A stretch of DNA of 64,000 nucleotides, from contig OZ365109.1 of NCBI GenBank assembly GCA_977030845.1, positions 17,608,001-17,672,000 of the forward strand, given 5' to 3'. The position numbers were made by a program, and so were the translations under genes. The DNA comes from Fimbriosthenelais zetlandica. Taxonomy: Eukaryota. Below, piece by piece: positions 3,001 through 33,453 of this stretch. Position 1 is the first letter of the stretch. Every line of letters begins with the position of its first letter. The notes under the pieces are model-generated. The model ran no database searches, had not been told where the DNA came from, and saw only the letters and a program-made list of their open reading frames with translations.

Positions 3001-6000
3001 ATGAAAATAGCTAATCTAGAGCTAATACAAATTTATGCGCGTTTATGGAGAAATGGCCAGTCCGAAGGCGAAGGAGTAAGTTATTTAAGAGTTTTAAACG
3101 CAGCATGTAATGACGACAAATAATCTGCTGGGGGTTTAAGTCAGCAGATACTGCCTGAGAGTTCCATGTTCCATGGGATGAGATATCCTAGATTGACGCA
3201 CCATTTGTGAATGCGAACAAAGCGCTTTTCCTATTTCTGGAAGTCGTATGTGACTTTATACCTTGGAATATGTCTGAGTTCAGTTCAAATCTAAAGTCAC
3301 CATCATATAATAGAGATAACATGGTAATCGCTTATTTCACCTTATGAATTCTTTTGTTTTAGTGAGCTATACGAGGTTTGTAAAGAAGCCTTGAAGCGTG
3401 AAATTTCCCGGGAGGAGGTTAGCGAAGAACTGCGTTCATCAATTTTTGAAAAACTAGAGATGCAGAACTTTCACGATCCGGACACATCTTCACTGTGGGA
3501 GCAACTTGCTGCCCAATGGTCATGGAAACCTAAACAGATGAAGGTATCAGATTATTAATTGTGTGAATTCACTATTATTTCCTCTATGAGCCAATCTTTG
3601 TCATATTGTGTAAAAATGTTTGGCAATTTTGCAACTGATCATGCTTGCACTTTATGTGCGTTGGAGCTAAAAGTATGAATTGATTGGAGACTGCAGTAAA
3701 ATTCTACCGTTCCAGTCCGGAACCCCAATGTTGTCAGGACCCTGGTTTCATGAAGGTGACGGTCCTTATGCAGAAGTAAACATTCCTGGTTGCTGGTTCT
3801 TCCGCCTTCCACACAAGGTAAATTGTGTTTGATTAAAAAATCTTTTCTATAATTAAAATTAATTTAATTTGATTTCATATAATCTCTTACGAAAATTGTT
3901 TTACAAGAATTTCATATGAAAATACTGAGTCCAACTTTCTCATTGAAAAGTTTGATTACAGGATGGAGCAGGGAATAGTACTGGGAACCCCTTATCCAAA
4001 GATAACCTCAAACGTATTGAAAGTGGCGAGATGAAGGCCAACAGTGGCACTAATGTTAATACAGTTCTCAAGAGGCATATATTCTGCTCATATTGGAAAA
4101 ATAATGAAGATCGCATACGGTAAGCTTAAGGCATTCAGGACTTTGTCTTCAGAGTCAATTAATTCTCGATATCCCTTATAAATAGTTGAAGATTTGCAAA
4201 CGTTCAAAAATATTTGACACTCGTGGAAAGTTTTATCAGAAAAATACCTCATGTCTAGAGAACTACTTTATACAGCACGTGGTATTTTTAATCAATCATT
4301 TACTCAAAATACATGGCAATTAAAGATTCGGAATCAAGTTAATGATGATAGTGTAAAAGGTTTGAGCACTTGGGTCTTTTCTATTCCAAAACTGGACCTT
4401 TCCATCGCGCTTTTGTTCGGGGAGGCCAGAGCTAGAGACAGCAATAGGCCTTTGGTACTGAGCGTACAAGAAAAAAAATGTGTTTGCCAAGAGGAGCAGG
4501 GTTAAAGTTGACCCTGGTCTGACCAGAAAAAAACATACAGAAGGTTTGCATTTATTGTAAGCCACTTATTTTAAGATGGAATAGGGACATTAGTAGGTAT
4601 GGTAAAGCCGGGTGCATATGATGACCGATTCACTCTGAAACTTGACTAAACATTTGTGGTTATCGATTTTTTGTTAAGGAAATTTTATTGCGATTATACT
4701 TAGGTTTTTGGTGCAATTTGTCTTAATTTACTTTCTTTTTCTCTCCCCAGGTCCCAGATTGTCGTACGCCTTGATCGAGATGATCTTCCAGATACTGTCT
4801 CAAGGTCAGTAACGCGTTTTGATTGTACCATCTTTTTTTAATTGAAAAGTGTTTAACTGCTATCTATGTAATACAAAAATAGTAGAACAGAAATAAAGGG
4901 AAGATGACTTAACAAAAGAGGAAAAATAGAAACAAACGAGAGAATACATGAGGGAGAGAGGAAAGAGACGGATAACGGTAGGATTAGTCGCAAGCAAGAA
5001 AGAGAAGAAAGTGCAGTAATATATTTTATTTCTGTTTCAATCTCCAGCAAATGGATTGAGGAGTTAAGGTAGTACATACTTTAACTTGGTATTGACATCA
5101 CTTGTGACCCCTATTGAATCTTTAATGCACCCACCTTGTTGAATTATTAACTTTTTATAAAATGAATGGACTGGAGAGATGATTGGACTGTGTTCTATTT
5201 TCTCATTTTCTTCTAATTTTATTTGTATCCACTATTATCTACCACTCTCCATATTTTTTCTCCCCACGGAATTCATGTCATGTTTTGTGTGTGGGTATGA
5301 AACCTCTAAATTGATTTTACTACTCTGTTGTTGGACCGCACTCTGTGTGATTGTGAATATTCTTGGTCGTTTTTTTCTATCCTGCGGAATCAATACTTTG
5401 TTACTCACTTCTGCATGGTGCACTTCGTCTGTCTTTTTTTCTTAATTTAAACTAATGATAAGCATGATGCAACGAAAAAAATTCTGCATTTTTTTCCAGA
5501 TATTTTTTCACATTTATTCCCTATTCATACCTTTGTGACACCACCCGGAACAAAAAAGGTTACAAGTTTCATTTCCTACCCACAAGGGTTTGCAGGAAGT
5601 GCAGGTCAAGAAGGGTCAGATACGGTCGCATTGAAGTGGGGACCTCGCTCTCTTTCTATGTTGTTCATATTTTTTCCAGATATTATGAATAGATTCTGAT
5701 ATAATTTTTCTTTACATTCTTACAGGGACAGTGGTTATGACAGCGAGACATTCTTTGGTGCTATTCTCCCGCGAGTTGTGACAGCTGGAACCGTCACAAG
5801 GAGAGCAGTGGAATCCACCTGGCTGACGGCCAGCAATGCCAGAGTATGTATAATTATCACTATAAATGATAACATCCGTTTATTTTATATTAGATCAATT
5901 ATTACTTATGAAAACCTGCTAAGATTTGCCCAAGTGCTGGGGTCATTGAATGTAAATATATTGACTTTTTGAAGAAACTGGTCCTTTGGAATGGTCGTCA

Positions 6001-10509: not shown

Positions 10510-13229
10510 TCAATTGAGATTTCCAGCCACAAGGCCTGATGGCACTGACTTATGGGACCTGAGTGAGGCCCTACTGTTGTTCATGGACTGGTTTGATCGG
10601 ATAGATGCCCTACTGTGGGACACTCTCTTGAAATCAGTCTCAGAAGCGTGAGGTGAGGTGGGTTGTCGTTTGAGTTTGTTAATGAGGAACCTGTGGAGGA
10701 GATTGTTGACGAGCTCCGGCTGTTCCATCATCACCATGTGACTCGCTCCTTCTATCACCTCAAGGATTGAGTCGCTCAGCACCTAGAGAAAAATGGAGTC
10801 AAAAATGAGACCTTATAAACCTATAAAAACCTAAATTGTTGCACTTGAAAAATCTTTAAAAACCTATATTTAAAGAAACTATTTAAAAACCTATAAGAAG
10901 GCTGGCACTCAGAAGCCTGATATTCAATTGCTGTACAATTCCACAAAATATAATTCCCCATTTACCGAAATAGCCTCTATTGGAATAGGCCTGGATTCAG
11001 GGACTAATCCTATCTGCTATTACTATTAGTACACTTCAACCTCTTTTTGTGCAATATAGCCATGCTCTATATGCTATAGAACACTTTGTAGGCAGGCACT
11101 ATTGAACATTATAGTGCACGGTCAATTTTCGCCTAAAATAAGTTTCACCCAGCATGGCCGGGAATTGAAACCAGGAACTCCTGACATGAAAACCTACTCC
11201 GTAGATGAACGCCAACTAATCCACAATATAAAAAATGCAGTAGAAGACTCACCCTGTCCATTTCATGCGTTTCTTCGCATGTGACAAGTTTATCTTGGCG
11301 GCCGTAGATGAGTAGTGTTTTGGCCGTCAGCAGTCTGTGGTAATCCTCCCCTCCCGCCAGCCACACCTGACCGTTCATGGTGTGCTTCAATACGTGGGTG
11401 GGAATGTCAAACGCCCGACCCATGAGAGCATGAGATTTCTTTCCATGGAATGCACTTCTGTTTAGGGAAAAATAGGGTAATGTGAATTTAAATTATGTCT
11501 AAAATATGCCCCCTGGAAATGGTGAATCTACAAAGAAGGTGATTCGTGTGAGTAATGACTTTCAACATAAATGCATTATTTTCAACACAAATTTTATGAT
11601 ATGAAAAATGTTGCCAATACTATCTTTTTACATAAATTTGGCTGCACACATTTCCTATGTTCGGATTTTGTTCTTGGAACATCTTCTGAATTACAGTACT
11701 TCCAATGGGAATCTTGTAACTCTAAAATAGAAGGTAAATATTTCGACTTACCTTCTAAACCCCCTATCGAGAAGTGGTTTAAAGCAGTTTAATATCCACA
11801 TCGGAGCAGAGAATGTGCCAGGTTGAGGAGCGAGCGGTGTGGGACTACCCCCACTCACCATAACTAGCTGCGTCACCAGCCGAGATCTCAACCGTGCTAA
11901 AACTGTGGCAAAACTTGACCTGGAATGGTGAACCAAAAAATTAGTTTAAAAATAATTATAAAGAAAATATTAGATCATGAATAATCAGTAATAATTTGAA
12001 AATAAAACCATTGAAAGAGCATGGGGAAAAAAGAACATTATGTACTGTAAATAATGTTCCAGTGCATATCCAGCTTAATTTTTTATGCAACACTTTGGAA
12101 TTACTTTATCCACCACCTCAAGTAAATGTTTTCATGCCACTCTAATTCTTTGAATTACCTACCCATATGAATGGCCTACGACCATGTTTTTTCTCTTGCA
12201 GTAGAGATCAAAGATAACTAAGAGATCGGCTGCGATCTCCTGGAAGTGATAAGCCTGGGGATCTTCGGGGGTACAACTAAAGCCATGTCCGATAAAATCT
12301 GGTAGAACCACCTCATACCCTTCCCTCATAAAATGATCAGCCTGGGCTTGCCAAATGGCCGAGGATCCGCCCACCCCGTGTATGAAAAATATCACAGTTT
12401 GTTCTTTAGCTGGGTCTAGAATTTTAGGGGGTGGAGTTGTATTATCAAGGGAGACACTCCTCTTTGGTATATTATTATCACTGTTCAATTTTTGTTCAAA
12501 ATTCACATCGACGACAATATTTTCGGCAGTGGTGGTTGATATATTGGCCAGTTCTTGACCAGCTCTTGGATCATCCACCCGACGAGCACCGCGAATGAAT
12601 GTAGGCGACCCTAGGACTAAGGTACCGTTGCCATCATCATCAGTATTAGTACTAGAATGTCTGCTACGTTTCCCAGATCTCACACTGCCTTTCCTCACAT
12701 CAAAATTAGACTGTCCTGAAGACTCCCTGGATAATGCTTTCTTCATTTGTTTTTCAAGTTCAGGACTATCAGCCCTGAAGCTTAAATTGTCCTCGCCTCT
12801 GTAACTCTGGCCTGTGTCTTGGTCGTGATAACTTTGATATGATTCCAGCTGCACTCCACCATTGGAGTGTTTTGGGGCCTGTTCTGGACTGGCATTTTGT
12901 TGGTCCATTCTCCCCGGTTGAGGTATGTTCCATGACTTGCCATGAGTTCCGTACTTGCCACTGCGTACTTGAGCTGCCATGAATTTTTCCATTTCATCTT
13001 GGAAGCGTTCTTCTCTCTTTCTGGGGTTGAGGTGGATAATACGCAGGTGGCGACCTGGTCTGATCTCCAGCAGGTCATAGCCCGGGTAGGTGCCTAAGGC
13101 AGGCTGGATTTTGGGGGACCTGCCCCCACAGCAGCAGAAACAGCATGATAAGGAGGTGGGTGATTCCGGGGAGGAGTGAGGATCTCGAATGGGTGAGGAT
13201 TGGTGCTGCTCTGGAGAAGCTGTAGCCAT
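10510..13229 (-). CDS. ABHD8: Alpha/beta hydrolase ABHD8-like, about 570 aa
   Basis: Coding exons 13229-12163, 11919-11752, 11457-11253, 10782-10510 (1713 nt, in frame). Motifs: FFIHGVGGS, PDFIGHGFS, nucleophile elbow GHSYG, acid YGRQDKLV, catalytic His in GASHMVMME; N-terminal Cys cluster and GYDLLEIRPGRHLRIIH resemble ABHD8. Acceptor at 13284; probable 5'UTR exon with donor at 14158. Confidence 0.9.
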
Positions 13230-13475
13230 ACCGGTACTCCTCCAGTGTGACAGGGGCAGCTGGCATTTTCATAGGCGACTGGTTCTAGAAAATAGAAAAA
13301 TGGGTCATCAACAAGATACTATTTTTTTTAATATTTCTCGAATCTAATTTTTTATATATAGGCCCTATAAATTCTGCCACAGTTTAGGCTATTCTAATGA
13401 CTGAAATGGCAGGCATGGCTAGTAGGAGAGTTAGGCCCTATAAATATTTGCACAGATATATTTGTATAAAAATAA

Positions 13476-13510
13476 CCCCCCCCCCCCCCCAAAAAAAAAA
13501 AAAAAAAAAA
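13476..13510. repeat. Abutting poly(C)15 and poly(A)20 homopolymers in the ABHD8 5' intron
   Basis: Read directly from the sequence. Confidence 0.85.
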
Positions 13511-14158
13511 CGCGATAAAAAGTCTAGACAGTTTGTTTTTTCTGTCAATTTCTTAAATGAATTTTATAATGTTTAGAATCAGAGTCTTATAGTTATACTA
13601 CAATAATGACAATTGTCAATTCACTTGTGATTTGTCACCTTTACACATGAAGCACTCGTTTTAATATTCACCCAGTCAGTATGGGTTTTGTTTGTTTTGC
13701 TGACTCTGCTCATTCACGTCATGATGCCCACCATTCAGCACTGCCAGTGCCAGTGGCTCAGGCAACAGCGGCTTGTAAACGTCTCCCAAACAAGGATTAT
13801 ATCACTGCCCAGATCGCACCTTCAGCTTTAATTTCGTCAAGATATAGCTAACTGAAATATCAACCCCTCCATAAAGACCATGACTCGTGTCAGGACCGAC
13901 AGAAATACTAGAAATTTAATACTTACACATGACAGACCTTGCAGACCCACGAGCAATGTTTACCCTGCCTCCGGAAGTGGCTGATTGATCCGGGCACTTC
14001 CTTTAGCCTTTTACATTTATAATCCCCTTAAATATATTCACCAAATATTGTAAACATTAAAATGCCAAACTAATTATACGGTAAAACATCCATTTCAATG
14101 AATCTTATATATCATTAGGGATATCCAGTAACAAAATCCTCGGAAGGAGAAACGTTAC

Positions 14159-14269
14159 CTAAAGCTAGCGCCACCTGAACAAGAAACGGCCAGTGGTGGA
14201 ACTAGCGCACCACGCATGCGCGGTCACAACAGTGCCCACTTCCTTTTCGTGTAATATCGAGCAGTCAAG
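14159..14269. promoter_or_regulatory. Compact bidirectional promoter of ABHD8 and RPS15, with the RPS15 TCT/5'TOP start
   Basis: Pyrimidine tract CTTCCTTTTC at 14239-14248, 31 nt before the RPS15 ATG; NRF1-like ACGCATGCGC at 14212-14221; minus-strand donor AG/GTAACG at 14158 for ABHD8 exon 1. Confidence 0.7.
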
Positions 14270-16473
<2,204 letters not shown>

Positions 16474-16503: not shown

Positions 16504-18322
16504 AGCCAGGAAGTGAATCTCTTGACTCCGTTATCTCTTACTCAAGCTGAGAAAATATGAACTAGGTTAGTGAGTCGCTTAAATGTACAAAACTTAACAG
16601 GGTTCCCACTGGACAGGAAAAAGAGGATAGTCAGTACAAAGTTTTGGGTAAAAGGTTCGTAAAAAGCGTTAACGATCAGGCAAAATAATTATAAATCTGT
16701 TAAAACCTACATTTTCATTTTGCTTAACTTTAAGATGGGGCTCAGTATAAAACGTAATTTAATACAGTGATAATCATTATTTGTCGGGAACTAAAGTATA
16801 ATCAAGTCAGTAAATTTTAACAGACGTTAGTGGGTACCCTGAATTATGTTGCTTGTTCTGGTTTGGCATTTGTTAGTTCGGTTCTTCGTTTTGTTTAATA
16901 TTTTTTGTTTAATATCTCCTCGCATTATGTTTTTGGGAAGGGGTTAGGTCAGTCACTAATTATAGGTGTTTGTATTAGACCGATGAATATGACAGATGAA
17001 TGCAATCGTGGTCAGGCTATCACAAATGAGGCTTATTAGTCTCAAATAGCCTCAAAACCATGATCCACCTTTTCTCATCATGACAAATATAATGTCATAA
17101 GTGAATAATAGGAATTGCTCCATGGCAACCTTAACAAAGAAGTTAAGCAAGCTTATCAAAATACAATCGTAGTTTGACAAAATGGATCCTTGGCTTGAAA
17201 GTCCCAGATCAGAACATTTATTCAGCCAAAGAATGCGAATGCACCGTGCTGGGGTAATTCTAGCCACAAATTTCTTTTAGCAAAAGTCAATTTGAAGCAA
17301 ACGATTCGAGGTAAAAAGCCCTTTCAAAATCAATATAGGCGTAATTTTTATTTCGCAAACTTTGCGAATAAGCCGTTTTCTTTTAGTAAAGTAGAATTTT
17401 TATTCGCAAATTGCGACAATGCGAACGGGTAGAGCGAGCCCAGGCACCGAAAATGTAAACCCGCCCTCCCTCAGTATGCTCCAGGTGATTTTATTGTGCA
17501 GGTATCCCATAGATCTGACTTATGAAACTAGTCATTAAGGGATTTTGCCTAATCTTGTTTTTTGAAACATGGCCAAGTTCTGCTCAAGGCCTACTTGGAG
17601 ACCATGGCTTGATCTATCACGCATTGTAAATGTTGTTGACTACGCCTATATAACATTGAGTCTGACCTCTAATTACATTAAATCAATGTGATTCATATTA
17701 TTTAGACCATTTTGTATCAACCTCAAGAATATTAAGTTTTCAAAAATCCAAATATCCACTGGCTAAGATCAGGGATTATGCTTTTGGAATCTAAGCTTTT
17801 ACATGTTCGATTTAAAGGAAGGGAGTTATTTCCAAGGTCAACACGCAAATTATTTAAGTAAACAGACAGATTTGGGGTCTTTAGAAAAGATTAAATCAAT
17901 CCTAACCTTAATGATAGATTTTGGCACATGTGAGGAGGCATTTAAATAAGATTTAGTATTTAGTATTGGCGTTACAAAAAGAATCTCCAACATGAAGTAA
18001 TTACGTGCATTTGGAAAATAATTCCTATTAGTTGAAATGATTCAACCTTTCTTAGAAATATTTAAAACATTATTTCAAAACAATACCGCTTTATATTTTT
18101 TTATATTTTATTAAAAATATTGAACTGAAAAATGAGGTCAACAATATTATTATTAGTTTATCACAGGACTAGAAAAATACACTTGTACATTGCATTGACA
18201 AAAAATATCAATCCACTTCAATGTACCTGTGTATGAAATATATTAACAAATCATAAATGCAGTATGAAAACAATACTATGTACAACATTATATCACTTAG
18301 AAGTTAGTTTAATTAAAAATAA

Positions 18323-21300
18323 TTAATATTTAGTACGAAACCGGCTCACAATATAAAGTACAGTAGCACCGACATACATGAGCATATTATCATAATCTGG
18401 AGCCACATAAGAAAGAGTTCTATATTGTGAGATATATTCAGCGTAGTTGGCGGCCCACACATGGCTGTAGGTCTGGGTGGATTTATCAAGACATCTAACA
18501 CGTTGCGAGAATGGCTCGACTTTTGACGATTGCCTGCTAATGAACTGTCCTCGGGTATCATTGGCTAAGTTAAAGGCTTGTTCTATGTCCGAGGAACCAG
18601 TTGCACCTTCAGAGGTTGAGGCTGCAGCTTCATTGCCTTCCATTTGCTCGTTTTGATTTGTCTCTTCACATTCCTCCTGTTCCTGTTCTTCCTCTTCGTC
18701 TTCCTCCTCCTCTTCTTCATAGTCACTATCAGACGGCCTCCTTGGCCTGTCATATTTTGGATCCAGCTCCATCATGGCCTTCACTTTTTCCATCATTTCC
18801 TCCATGTTGATCACCTTCTCTTCACTTGGTGTTATTACACAATCATCTTCTAATTCAGGTCCCTCCCTTGCAGGACGAACAACTGCATCACCTCCAACTG
18901 TCTCTTCATTGACTGTATCACTAATAATATTTGCAGCAGTGTCTTCAGACACATTTTCACTAACATTGCTATTTGTTGCAGCAGTGTCACCAGGCACATT
19001 GTCACTAACATTGCTATTTGTTGCAGCAGTGTCTTCAGGCACATTTTCACTAACATTCGTATTTGTTGCAACAGTGTCTTCAGGCACAGTTTTTGTTGCA
19101 GCAGTGTCTTCAGACACATTTTCACTAACATTGCTATTTGTTGCAGCAGTGTCACCAGGCACATTGTCACTAACATTGCTATTTGTTGCAGCAGTGTCTT
19201 CAGGCACATTTTCACTAACATTCGTATTTGTTGCAACAGTGTCTTCAGGCACAGTTTTTGTTGCAGCAGTGTCTTCAGACACATTTTCACTAACATTGCT
19301 ATTTGTTGCAGCAGTGTCATCAGGCACATTGTCACTAACATTGCTATTTGTTGCAGCAGTATCATCAGGCACATTGTCACTACCATTGCTATTTATTGCA
19401 GCAGTGTCATCAGGCACATTGTCACTAACATTGCTATTTGTTGCAGCAGTGTCTTCAGGCACAGTTTTTGTTGCAGCAGTGTCTTCAGGCACATTTTCAC
19501 TAACATTCGTATTTGTTGCAACAGTGTCATCAGGCACATTGTCACTAACATTACTATTTGTTGCAGCAGTGTCTTCAGGCACATTTTCACTAACATTACT
19601 ATTTGTTGCAGCGGTGTCTTCAGGCACATTTTCACTAACATTTCTATTTGTTGCAGCGGTGTCTTCAGGCACATTTTCACTACCATTGCTATTTATTGCA
19701 GCAGTATCTTCAGGGATGTTTTCACTAACAGTATTTGTTGCAGCAATGCCTTCAGGCACATTTTCAATAACATTATTTCCTTGATTTTCATTCATCTCCC
19801 CATTACAAACTTGGGATCGATTGTCAACATTGTCTTGATCTTCCACGGTACCATCATTAGCTTCCGGAACTGACTGCTCATTTTCAATACCATTTTTCTG
19901 AGATTCATCGGTGCCCTCATTTGGTGCTTCATTGGATATTATGTTCTTGTCCGAAAGAGAAGCACCCTCTGGGGTTACAGGAATGAGTGCTTTATCTTCT
20001 GGTTTTTCATTTGATTCGGCTACATTCGATGAAACACACATTTCAATTTTGATATTGTTAATGACAGTGTCCATCTTTAAATTGTCCATATCTTGGCAGA
20101 TCCTTTCAGATTCAGTGTCTACAACCTCTGGGGGATTGTTCACCTTTTCTTGTACTATAGATTCTAGATTTTCTGTTGTATCTTCAATAACAGATTCTGT
20201 CGCCTTACATTCCTCTACCGCAGCCCTAACAGCAGCAGCAGTAACAGCTGCAGCTGTAGTAGAAACAGTCTCTAGCATTTGGCTCTCACTTAGTTCCACA
20301 TTATTGGTATCATTTTCTGTAGTGAAACCATCAGTTTTAGCATTGCTTTCAGTGTCATTTTCACTTCCTGATGGCCCCTCGCTTGTTGAGGTTGTTTCTC
20401 TTTGATTTTCAATAAGTTCATTTGACTCCTTGGTTATATTTTCTTCATTACTTTGTTCTAGATTAGTCATCTCTTGCTGGGTTGTATCGTCTGTGAGCTC
20501 AGCTTTTGGTTGACTTGAGTCATCTTTAATTTCAGATTCTCCTGTGGCCTCTTGGGTAGTGTTATGGTCATTAGATCCACTTTGTTCGGATTGGTTATTT
20601 TCACCCTCTTGCCCCTCTGCTTCTGTCTTTTCTGCTCCTTCTTTCGCTGCTTCTGCCTTTTCTGCTCCTTCCTTCTCTACCCTTTCTGCTTCTAGTTTCT
20701 CTGCCTCTATTCTTTCTGCCTCCCTCTTCTCTGCCTCGATCCTCTCCATTTCTTTCGCCTCAGCCTCTCTTTTTTCAATCTCTGCCAGAATGGCCAGGAT
20801 TTCTTCATCATCTTCTATAAGTCGAGGTCCGCTGAAGTCGGAGATATCTCTCCCAGTCAGGCTTAGCCTCACAGTCTTGTAAAATCCATGTTCCTCGTCT
20901 TCGCATCCATCGAAGTAAGGGGAGAGAGGATCTGACTGGTTTGGGTAGTAAAAGAGGAAAAGAATTCCTTGTACACAGTCCACTAGCCCAAAGGTGGCCT
21001 CCCATTCATCTAGCAGACTGAGGCAGACATTATTGCACCTGGATGTAGGGTCTATGTTGGGATGGTAGATGTCTGTGAGGCAGGTCAATGCTGGGGCTTT
21101 CTTGGGGAAATCATGACCGATCTTTACCTATATTTCAGAAAGAAGTTGAATGTATTATAACAAAATTCATTATATGTTTGTGATATTCCCAATTCTACAC
21201 TCCCACACATTGATGGTAATGGACCCTTACAGTTTATTGCATCATAAATCAGTGATGGAAATTAGGTTATGTGGGTGATACTATTGTTGTGCAATATTTC

Positions 21301-21946
21301 AATGCTCTAGCAGGTCTATTAATCATATGTTTTGTGTTGTGCCCCACCCTCTCACTAGTCCATTTTTGCTACCACCCCAACTAACAACGGAGGAGGCCTA
21401 ACCAAAAATATATTAATTAGCTCAACAAAATTTTCCAATTTAATTTTCCAATCTTTTGATATGACTGCCTCACTTTTGACACCCTACACAGTAATGAATC
21501 CGATTGGAATATTGCATGAATACCTGACTGGTGTACGTTGAACATAGTATTAGTAGGTCAGCGAAAAGGAAGTTTAATTTTTTTGTAGGCATACTATAAA
21601 GGGGTTATTTGATTTAAATAATAGGCCTATGCTGCTGGGTAATGCATTTTACAATCCCAAGTAATGTTGTGTTAATTGTGAAACGATATTAAAAAAAATA
21701 TTTTCATTGATATAAAAACTTATTCAGCTTAAAATTAAATAGGTAATATAAATAATTAAAGAGTAAATGATTAATTACCTTGAACTTGAATTTCGCTCCA
21801 TGGTAAGGCCCTTCTTTGGGTGTAACATCCAGAAGGATCCAGGAGAGAAAGTCCGAATCATAGTCCGAAACCTGCACCTGACCGTCCGTGAAAGAATTCA
21901 CAGACGTCAGGAATTTATAGCAGTCTTTAGCTCGAGTGGAAACCAT
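18323..21946 (-). CDS. Ubiquitin-conjugating (E2/UBC) family protein, Ubc12/UBE2M-like core, with a long acidic repeat-rich C-terminal extension, about 990 aa
   Basis: Exon 1 21946-21779 (56 codons, ...VTPKEGPYHGAKFKFK) joins in phase 0 to exon 2 21127-18323 (VKIGHDFPKKAPALTCLTDIYHPNIDPTSRCNNVCLSLLDEW...FLFYYPNQSDPL). The HPN motif and putative catalytic Cys (VCLSLL) are intact. Confidence 0.88.
18931..19765 (-). repeat. Coding minisatellite: 45-bp (15-aa EDTAATNSNVSENVP) and 30-bp (10-aa EDTAATKTVP) units with a 165-bp higher-order repeat
   Basis: About 19 units plus a partial. The diagnostic GTCACCAGGC variant recurs at 18986 and 19151, 165 bp apart. Confidence 0.95.
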
Positions 21947-22212
21947 GATGATTACTCTGTATCGAAGACTATTGAACTGATATTAGAAATATATATTTCT
22001 CTTCCTACAATTGATGTATTTCCCCTATAAACTGTTTGGGGATTTTCCAGAGCTTTGTAAATTTCCCCAAGGCAAATGTAAATAATGCCTGGTGTATGAG
22101 CAACTATGGAATAAGCATTGGTATCGGAGTGGTATTGTAACCAGTGTATTACTTCTTCCTGTTTGGATCTCTGGTGCTTGGAATGAAGTGCCGAGTCTGT
22201 GTGTGGTACTAT

Positions 22213-23677: not shown

Positions 23678-33453
<9,776 letters not shown>

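Follow-up and report, generated by a model that had tools for sequence, protein, structure and literature searches.

A predicted 990-residue Ubc12-like E2 of Fimbriosthenelais zetlandica with an acidic spacer and a conserved C-terminal module

The stretch of DNA analysed here, referred to as the window, comprises 64,000 nucleotides of Fimbriosthenelais zetlandica (NCBI GenBank assembly GCA_977030845.1, contig OZ365109.1, positions 17,608,001 to 17,672,000) and does not contain any N. On its minus strand lies a gene for an E2 conjugating enzyme composed of three parts: a catalytic core resembling that of Ubc12, a long acidic spacer, and a conserved C-terminal module that ends in a hydrophobic and then basic tail. 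Judged from its sequence, this is a previously undescribed E2 with a conserved architecture. An earlier note, made from the letters of the window, had proposed that the tail anchors the enzyme in a membrane. Coordinates are those of the window unless another locus is named.

Gene structure

Two open reading frames (ORFs) of the ORF listing, a minus-strand frame of 921 codons at 18323-21088 and an upstream ATG frame beginning at 21946, are joined by one intron in the following gene model.

21779..21946, minus strand: exon 1, codons 1-56, with the ATG at 21946 and the donor AAG/GTAATT
21128..21778, minus strand: intron of 651 nt, GT...AG, phase 0, after F[KR]
18323..21127, minus strand: exon 2, codons 57-990 and the TAA stop, with the acceptor ATATAG/GTA, phase 0
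18107..18112, minus strand: AATAAA polyadenylation-type signal, ~210 nt past the TAA stop

The spliced product has 990 residues. Exon 1 contributes helix 1 and the first strands of the ubiquitin-conjugating (UBC) fold, with no N-terminal extension, and exon 2 holds the remaining E2 core, the spacer and the C-terminal module in a single open frame. The earlier note had seen an intact core at the N-terminus; the core is indeed intact, but it is split by the 651-nt intron. A look-up of sequencing runs for this species, for RNA over 18100-22000 and for any type over 18150-21127, returned none.

An in-frame stop lies 12 codons 5' of the ATG. In the locus of the relative P0001 (L001), the orthologous exon at 4918-5085 is 63% identical and begins MVSRRARD, keeping the protein start MVS[TR]RA, and the phase-0 intron position is common to the window, L001 and the locus of a further relative, P0003 (L004). 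A genome search found the window gene to be the sole copy of its family, with a canonical multi-exon Ubc12 gene on another contig of the same genome. On this sequence evidence, we regard the window gene as functional and single-copy, its two exons encoding an E2 of 990 residues.

Relatives

Three long proteins were found by a word-seeded search with the core that was restricted to long candidates, and about 45 further members were added by a profile search, a short-core search and a metagenome scan. P0001, encoded on a 1.58-Mb eukaryotic contig of an ENA assembly, has the same build as the window protein and ends in ...FVAPDYDNALMYVGATCLYALHRFAK. P0002 (locus L003) comes from a 2.4-kb JGI contig on which a single intron-free ORF, flanked by 191 nt and 345 nt, spans core, spacer and tail; because the whole protein lies in an intron-free frame with flanking untranslated regions, this contig is most likely an mRNA. 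The only named members among them are proteins of Haliotis rufescens and H. cracherodii (annotated as 'uncharacterized protein'), of Haliotis rubra and Actinia tenebrosa (annotated as 'NEDD8-conjugating enzyme UBC12-like'), and partial Nematostella proteins. Across this wider family, which was not part of the earlier note, extensions past the core range from ~20 to ~830 residues. Diagnostic of the family are the signatures FTDGQA, IYHPNIDP and NPNLEDPLSPYF, together with the conserved intron position.

An exhaustive HMMER search with the last 95 residues returned P0001 as its only true match; P0004 and P0005, which were also matched, are unrelated repeat proteins. Neither the window nor L001 showed THOC5, the neighbour of the relative P0007, and a search of a literature library for a described long Ubc12-like E2 or for this family yielded no relevant paper.

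Two ENA contigs encode proteins with two complete Ubc12-like cores in tandem within one ORF (P0006 and P0022, 457 and 479 aa), and these contigs also encode the single-core paralogues P0017, P0025 and P0050. This arrangement points to local tandem duplication, the product being either a read-through or a true double E2.

The catalytic core

Three features define the part of the core that is encoded by exon 2.

20807..21127, minus strand: exon-2 share of the UBC core, residues 57-163 (Pfam UQ_con 1e-12; PDB Ubc12 6.5e-13)
21056-21064, minus strand: HPN motif, residues 78-80
21011-21028, minus strand: VCLSLL with the catalytic Cys91

The UBC fold is identified by a match to the Pfam family UQ_con (PF00179; E=1e-12, 48 bits against a cut-off of 27) and by the HPN motif with a cysteine ~10 residues downstream. 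Eighteen relatives share 27 invariant columns, of which the window protein keeps 26, the exception being G51, which is replaced by A; the core with its HPN and VCLSLL cysteine is thus as intact as the earlier note had described it. An AlphaFold 2 (AF2) model of residues 1-170 of P0002, made with 18 family rows, has a predicted local distance difference test score (pLDDT) of 86 and an E2-like order of helices and strands. This model has 438 E2 matches in the PDB at E<=0.001, and in a Foldseek search the top six are all Ubc12 (template modelling score 0.71-0.76), with UBE2F at rank 15. By sequence, the solved relatives are headed by UBE2M/Ubc12 (2e-24), followed by UBE2F (1e-14) and UBE2L3 (1e-13). 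The 60 top-ranking solved relatives in sequence and the top 50 in fold included no UBE2J/Ubc6 chain; Ubc12 heads both lists, and the core is not of the Ubc6/UBE2J type. The ESM Atlas returned only generic E2 clusters for the core. In sequence and in predicted fold, the window core is nearest to Ubc12/UBE2M, which bears out the Ubc12 likeness claimed from its wording.

A maximum-likelihood tree was built from 30 cores: 27 family rows, two canonical rotifer Ubc12s and one UBE2D-like outgroup. All 27 family rows form one clade (support 100/97) on a long branch, apart from the two canonical Ubc12s. Inside this clade the window protein pairs with P0001 (100/99) and next with P0002 (86/75), and the abalone proteins are not adjacent to it. 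In this tree, with its two canonical Ubc12s and single outgroup, the window core does not fall inside the canonical Ubc12 clade, and its membership of an undescribed clade sister to, and outside, canonical Ubc12/UBE2M is well supported by the aligned sequences. Placement in a known long E2 family, which the earlier note had named as a finding that would speak against it, did not emerge; the core groups with none. The UBE2D (UbcH5)-like outgroup is a 147-aa E2 encoded by an intron-less gene on the same chromosome (G000 C1:57893520-57893936; L006 1468-1911, minus strand), possibly a retrocopy.

Missing from the protein, as the earlier note had stated, is the N-terminal extension that docks to UBA3 and DCN1. 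The protein begins at helix 1, whereas the canonical Ubc12s in the same alignment have ~25 extra N-terminal residues. The start MVS[TR]RA is conserved in L001, and in-frame stops lie upstream of the start both in the window and in the intron-free contig of P0002, where they precede Met1. The N-terminal peptide of Ubc12 docks to the NEDD8 E1 (UBA3) and to DCN1, and gives Ubc12 its E1 specificity. Because this docking peptide is a defining feature and was looked for and found missing, we do not class the protein among the NEDD8 E2s despite its closest resemblance to one; and because it is the peptide that confers E1 specificity on Ubc12, the modifier may be either NEDD8 or ubiquitin.

The acidic spacer

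Between the core and the C-terminal module is a spacer of 664 aa (E 15%, N 13%, T 11%) with a net charge of -119. At the end of the core, a conserved GPRLIEDD (residues 156-163) directly precedes an E/R/K-rich stretch, and the spacer also holds a tandem array.

20612..20809, minus strand: E/R/K-rich segment, residues 163-228, seen in the sequence, with a similar segment in P0001
18931..19774, minus strand: 45-nt (15-aa) tandem array, in frame, with units of type VSENVPEDTAATNSN (Tandem Repeats Finder, TRF)

The E/R/K-rich segment possibly forms a single alpha-helix or a coiled-coil stalk. The array has ~20 copies according to TRF, or 16 when the protein is divided into its units, and its copies are 71-88% alike at the DNA level. 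Relatives have different repeats at the same place, and the disordered acidic spacer evolves by lineage-specific repeat expansion. Matches of the spacer to Pfam HC2 and DUF7950 are far below their cut-offs and were set aside as artefacts of composition. Also rejected were a plus-strand ORF of 336 codons at 18774-19784, rich in F, L, V, S and T, created by the 45-nt repeat and almost certainly not a gene, and other short ORFs in the repeat, all of them by-products of the repeat.

The C-terminal module

The final ~160 residues form a conserved, non-repetitive module. The earlier note had described the region between core and tail as roughly 800 Glu/Asp/Asn/Thr-rich low-complexity residues; the acidic, E/N/T-rich spacer agrees with this description, but the region is not uniform, being divided into a helix-like stretch, the 45-nt repeats and this module. 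In order from the spacer to the tail, the module contains the following elements.

18752..18814, minus strand: short amphipathic helix, residues 828-848, VINMEEMMEKVKAMMELDPKY, aligned in the window protein, P0001, P0002, P0007 and L023
18662..18733, minus strand: poly-acidic run, residues 855-878, which follows the helix in every aligned relative
18515..18535, minus strand: RQxSKxE motif (RQSSKVE, residues 921-927), invariant in four aligned C-terminal modules
18470..18487, minus strand: DKSTQT, residues 937-942, a TQT motif of LC8/DYNLL type, aligned in orthologues

An AF2 model of the last 183 residues has a mean pLDDT of 49 and was used only for hints of secondary structure. It places a helix at 828-848 (block pLDDT ~71) and a lone helix on the last 25 residues (158-182 in the numbering of the 183-aa model, pLDDT ~65), the rest of the module being mostly disordered. 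An ESM Atlas search with the C-terminal 105 residues gave no usable match. RQxSKxE and DKSTQT are, on the alignments, conserved elements beyond those that the earlier note had described. Variants of RQxSKxE occur in other clades (RQNSK, RLDSK and [RK]QDS, including L023, L025 and the P0013-17 clade), and the R-x-x-S within it resembles a basophilic kinase site, as far as the sequence can suggest.

About 15 residues downstream of RQxSKxE is the TQT motif, which reads DKSTQT in the window protein, DKGTQT in P0001 and NKGTQT in P0002. The published LC8/DYNLL motif is [D/S]K x [T/V/I] Q [T/V] [D/E], and such motifs sit in disordered segments, often flanked by dimerisation elements (PMC3078936). 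DKSTQT-Y fits the published motif at positions -4 to +1 and lies in a segment with pLDDT <50 and no secondary structure in the AF2 model, as expected of a motif in a disordered segment. The composition of the window protein as a whole predicts 0.28 TQT tripeptides; it has one. A complex prediction for a dimer of this genome's own LC8 with a 43-residue TQT peptide had a median score of 0.02, the mark being 0.34, although a single run of the three reached 0.61; this result is used neither in favour of binding nor against it.

LC8/dynein light chain has four intact, intron-less genes in this genome (loci L111-L114), an unusually high copy number for a hub protein.

G000 C11:14648563-14648814: LC8 gene
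G000 C11:14651095-14651346: LC8 gene, 2.5 kb from the copy at C11:14648563 and with identical scores
G000 C11:47064207-47064458: LC8 gene
G000 C38:5391531-5391782: LC8 gene

TQT tripeptides also occur in other clades of the family, at residue 276 of P0009/P0018 (Haliotis) and at residue 175 of L050 (LTTQTSD, KETQTVE), and these could be independent LC8-type sites.

The conserved tail

At the end of the module is a tail of 30 residues with three successive parts.

18326..18415, minus strand: conserved 30-residue tail, residues 961-990; VAPDYD, then NMLMYVGATVLYIVS, then RFRTKY
18344-18388, minus strand: uncharged stretch NMLMYVGATVLYIVS, 15 residues, 13 of them apolar
18326-18343, minus strand: basic end RFRTKY, with three basic residues, preceding the stop

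Between the window protein and P0001, identity is 62.7% in the core, 27.9% in the spacer, 36% over the helix and acidic run, 33% from the RQ motif to the tail, and 67.9% in the tail itself. Compared by tblastx, the window and the P0001 locus share three conserved blocks, corresponding to exon 1, the core and the tail (tail block 63.6%). The design of VAPDYD followed by an apolar and then a basic part recurs in L023 and P0007; a search for orthologues sharing the tail had been proposed by the earlier note. The C-terminus of Haliotis family proteins is a basic amphipathic stretch that closes with CPQKCKK.

For a test of tail position, 50 members were grouped into 20 clusters at 65% core identity, and the 18 with extensions of at least 80 residues were examined. 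In 11 of these 18 clusters, the 13-mer with the highest hydrophobicity in the extension falls among the last 35 residues, against 2.6 expected (Poisson-binomial P ~2e-6, which is an indication and not a strict probability, as the clusters share ancestry). In a further cluster, represented by a double-E2 protein, the single-core members also have a terminal hydrophobic segment. In most clades with a hydrophobic tail, the charge after the hydrophobic segment is +2 to +6. The window protein has a single hydrophobic segment within ~35 residues of its C-terminus, ending 6-7 residues before the stop, and no N-terminal signal, its N-terminus being the E2 core; in these respects it is built as tail-anchored proteins are. 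A hydrophobic stretch followed by basic residues, which the earlier note had read in the window as NMLMYVGATVLYIVS-RFRTKY-stop, is conserved and C-terminal across the family. By sequence and model, the tail is a helical element under selection at the C-terminus, first hydrophobic and then basic.

Genomic neighbourhood

On the same strand of the window are an exon with an alpha/beta-hydrolase fold at 12159-13229 (Abhydrolase_1, 1.6e-14) and a Helicase_C exon at 26769-27218, the latter fitting an ERCC6-like gene that the earlier reader had proposed at ~31-33 kb. In L001, a retroelement with integrase H2C2 and reverse transcriptase ORFs occupies 13114-14487, ~4.6 kb downstream of the orthologous E2.

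Possible membrane address or protein contact

As the best explanation of this architecture, to which we assign a probability of roughly 45%, we propose an E2 that is addressed to a membrane by its C-terminal module and works at the end of an acidic leash. The Cys91/HPN core would be charged by an E1 and carry NEDD8 or ubiquitin, and the C-terminal module would set the location of the enzyme. The terminal helix would serve as a weak tail anchor of mitochondrial/peroxisomal type, or failing that would associate with the membrane, and so hold the protein at the cytosolic side of an organelle. The TQT motif would recruit dimeric LC8, pairing two tails, and the long acidic chain would allow the catalytic domain to reach targets tens of nanometres away.

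The strength of the tail as an anchor was gauged by its Kyte-Doolittle 19-residue mean (KD19), with the classical rule of thumb of 1.6 and five genuine tail anchors from the same genome as a benchmark.

VAMP (first): KD19 3.05
VAMP (second): KD19 4.01
Sec61beta: KD19 2.41
Fis1: KD19 2.17 (27 uncharged residues)
Mff: KD19 1.31 (internal R and Q)

Several observations weigh against the proposal. The window tail has a KD19 of 0.83, below the 1.6 rule and below all five controls, the nearest being of the mitochondrial/peroxisomal Mff type, and with 15 uncharged residues it falls short, by simple scales, of the length and hydrophobicity that span a bilayer. Its sum on the octanol scale is a marginal -2.4 kcal/mol. 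The aligned tail segment of P0002 contains D, E, P and R, and no hydrophobic tail is present in the L024/L026-L033 clade, the P0010-12 clade, P0047 or the ~185-aa forms. That individual residues are conserved in YVGAT and PDYDN fits a specific protein contact no less than a membrane span, the AF2 confidence for the C-terminal module is low (mean pLDDT 49), and the gene model for this species is read from genomic DNA. In favour of the membrane is the same-genome Mff anchor, which is likewise weak (KD19 1.31, internal R and Q), and some relatives have 16-30 uncharged tail residues and KD19 values of up to 1.83, the strongest being P0016 (1.83, with 17 apolar residues) and P0007 (1.67). Of the possible membrane tail anchor named by the earlier note, the conserved, C-terminal and basic-flanked character therefore stands, and transmembrane hydrophobicity does not (KD19 of 0.83, under 1.6 and under the five controls). 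We consider some form of membrane association of the tail to be slightly favoured, and its integral anchoring to be plausible at somewhat less than even odds; the segment is a candidate for a strict transmembrane tail anchor, though too short for a confident call.

A soluble enzyme is a tentative but credible alternative. Its terminal helix would be a protein-protein element, serving either self-association together with LC8 or docking to an E3, to an E1 or to the enzyme's own core, and its acidic chain would bind basic surfaces such as those of cullins, in the manner of the acidic tail of Cdc34. The hydrophobic stretch is short and weak beside the tail anchors of the same genome; the conservation of PDYDN and YVGAT goes beyond hydrophobicity, the aligned tail of P0002 is charged and amphipathic, and the huge net negative charge with its conserved poly-acidic run would suit a basic partner. 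LC8 motifs are, moreover, typically flanked by dimerisation elements (PMC3078936). Harder to reconcile with solubility is the hydrophobic element that most clades keep at the extreme C-terminus, with a basic flank after it, despite sequence drift: extreme position and basic flank are traits of tail anchors that a binding peptide does not need, and P0016 and P0007 reach transmembrane-like length and hydrophobicity. The extension could also have no specific function, belonging to a Ubc12-like E2 with a neutrally drifting repeat and an incidental hydrophobic end, as might be suggested by repeats of recent, lineage-specific origin (copies 71-88% identical in DNA) and by lengths running from ~20 to ~830 residues across the family. 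Against drift, the tails of the window protein and P0001 are conserved like the catalytic core while the spacer is at 28%, four short motifs keep the same order across distant members, and the hydrophobic segment is enriched by position; this pattern of conservation largely refutes the neutral reading, as far as sequences can, and leaves it quite unlikely. Because of the same pattern, we consider it very unlikely that the locus is a pseudogene or a false gene model whose long ORF is a by-product of the tandem repeat. The repeats do generate the 336-codon antisense ORF as well, and the model rests on genomic DNA, but 934 codons are open in DNA of ~39% G+C, mostly outside the repeat, canonical splice sites bound an intron whose position is common to two other loci, 26 of the 27 invariant core residues are intact, and the stop codon occupies the same position as in the orthologue.

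To our knowledge, only two NEDD8 E2s are recognised, UBE2M and UBE2F, and the only E2s known to be tail-anchored at the C-terminus are the endoplasmic reticulum (ER) enzymes of the Ubc6/UBE2J type. The window protein combines a Ubc12-like core that lacks the docking peptide with a conserved C-terminal module, its putative address, at the end of a disordered chain that varies greatly in length. Should this module tether the enzyme, it would offer a new mode of localising NEDD8- or ubiquitin-conjugating activity, and a natural system in which to ask how far linkers of different length let a tethered enzyme reach. The most far-reaching version, which we think unlikely, would be a third NEDD8-type E2 lineage, present in cnidarians, molluscs and other invertebrates and absent from the named vertebrate E2s, which lacks the docking peptide and is placed on the mitochondrial or peroxisomal surface by an LC8-dimerised, weakly tail-anchored helix, its acidic leash of <=800 residues serving neddylation or ubiquitination at the organelle surface. 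On a cautious reading too, the analysis defines an unannotated invertebrate E2 family, for which the existing database labels are automatic.

Comparison with known systems

Ubc12/UBE2M shares with the window protein the HPNID motif, the context of the catalytic cysteine, PNxxDPL and C-terminal helices ending in G..V.G..F.RN. The window protein differs in having no docking peptide, in being one residue shorter after the catalytic cysteine, and in diagnostic substitutions (DPLN...A in Ubc12, DPLS...F in the window protein); the canonical Ubc12s recovered with the family all stop exactly 82 residues past HPN, and the window protein continues for ~830 more. UBE2F, a Ubc12 paralogue with partners of its own, likewise has a UBC core of the NEDD8-E2 group, but is clearly more distant from the window core (1e-14 against 2e-24; Foldseek rank 15). 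UBE2F has an N-terminal docking extension and is without a long C-terminal region.

Ubc6, UBE2J1 and UBE2J2 resemble the window protein in overall layout, with an N-terminal E2 core and a hydrophobic segment at the extreme C-terminus. The window core is not of the Ubc6 type, however, its linker is >10x longer, and its tail is far shorter and weaker than ER anchors (KD19 of 0.83, against 2.4-4.0 for Sec61beta and the VAMPs). With LC8/DYNLL clients it shares a motif, DKSTQT, that lies in a predicted disordered segment, is conserved in orthologues and adjoins a helix; it differs from them in having a single site and not an array, and in position +2, which is Y or C, not D/E, in two of three proteins. 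Cdc34/UBE2R likewise has a strongly acidic, disordered tail behind its catalytic core, which is of another family; the tail of the window protein differs from that of Cdc34 in being ~800 residues long with tandem repeats, and in ending in a conserved hydrophobic/basic helix, accompanied by an LC8-type motif.

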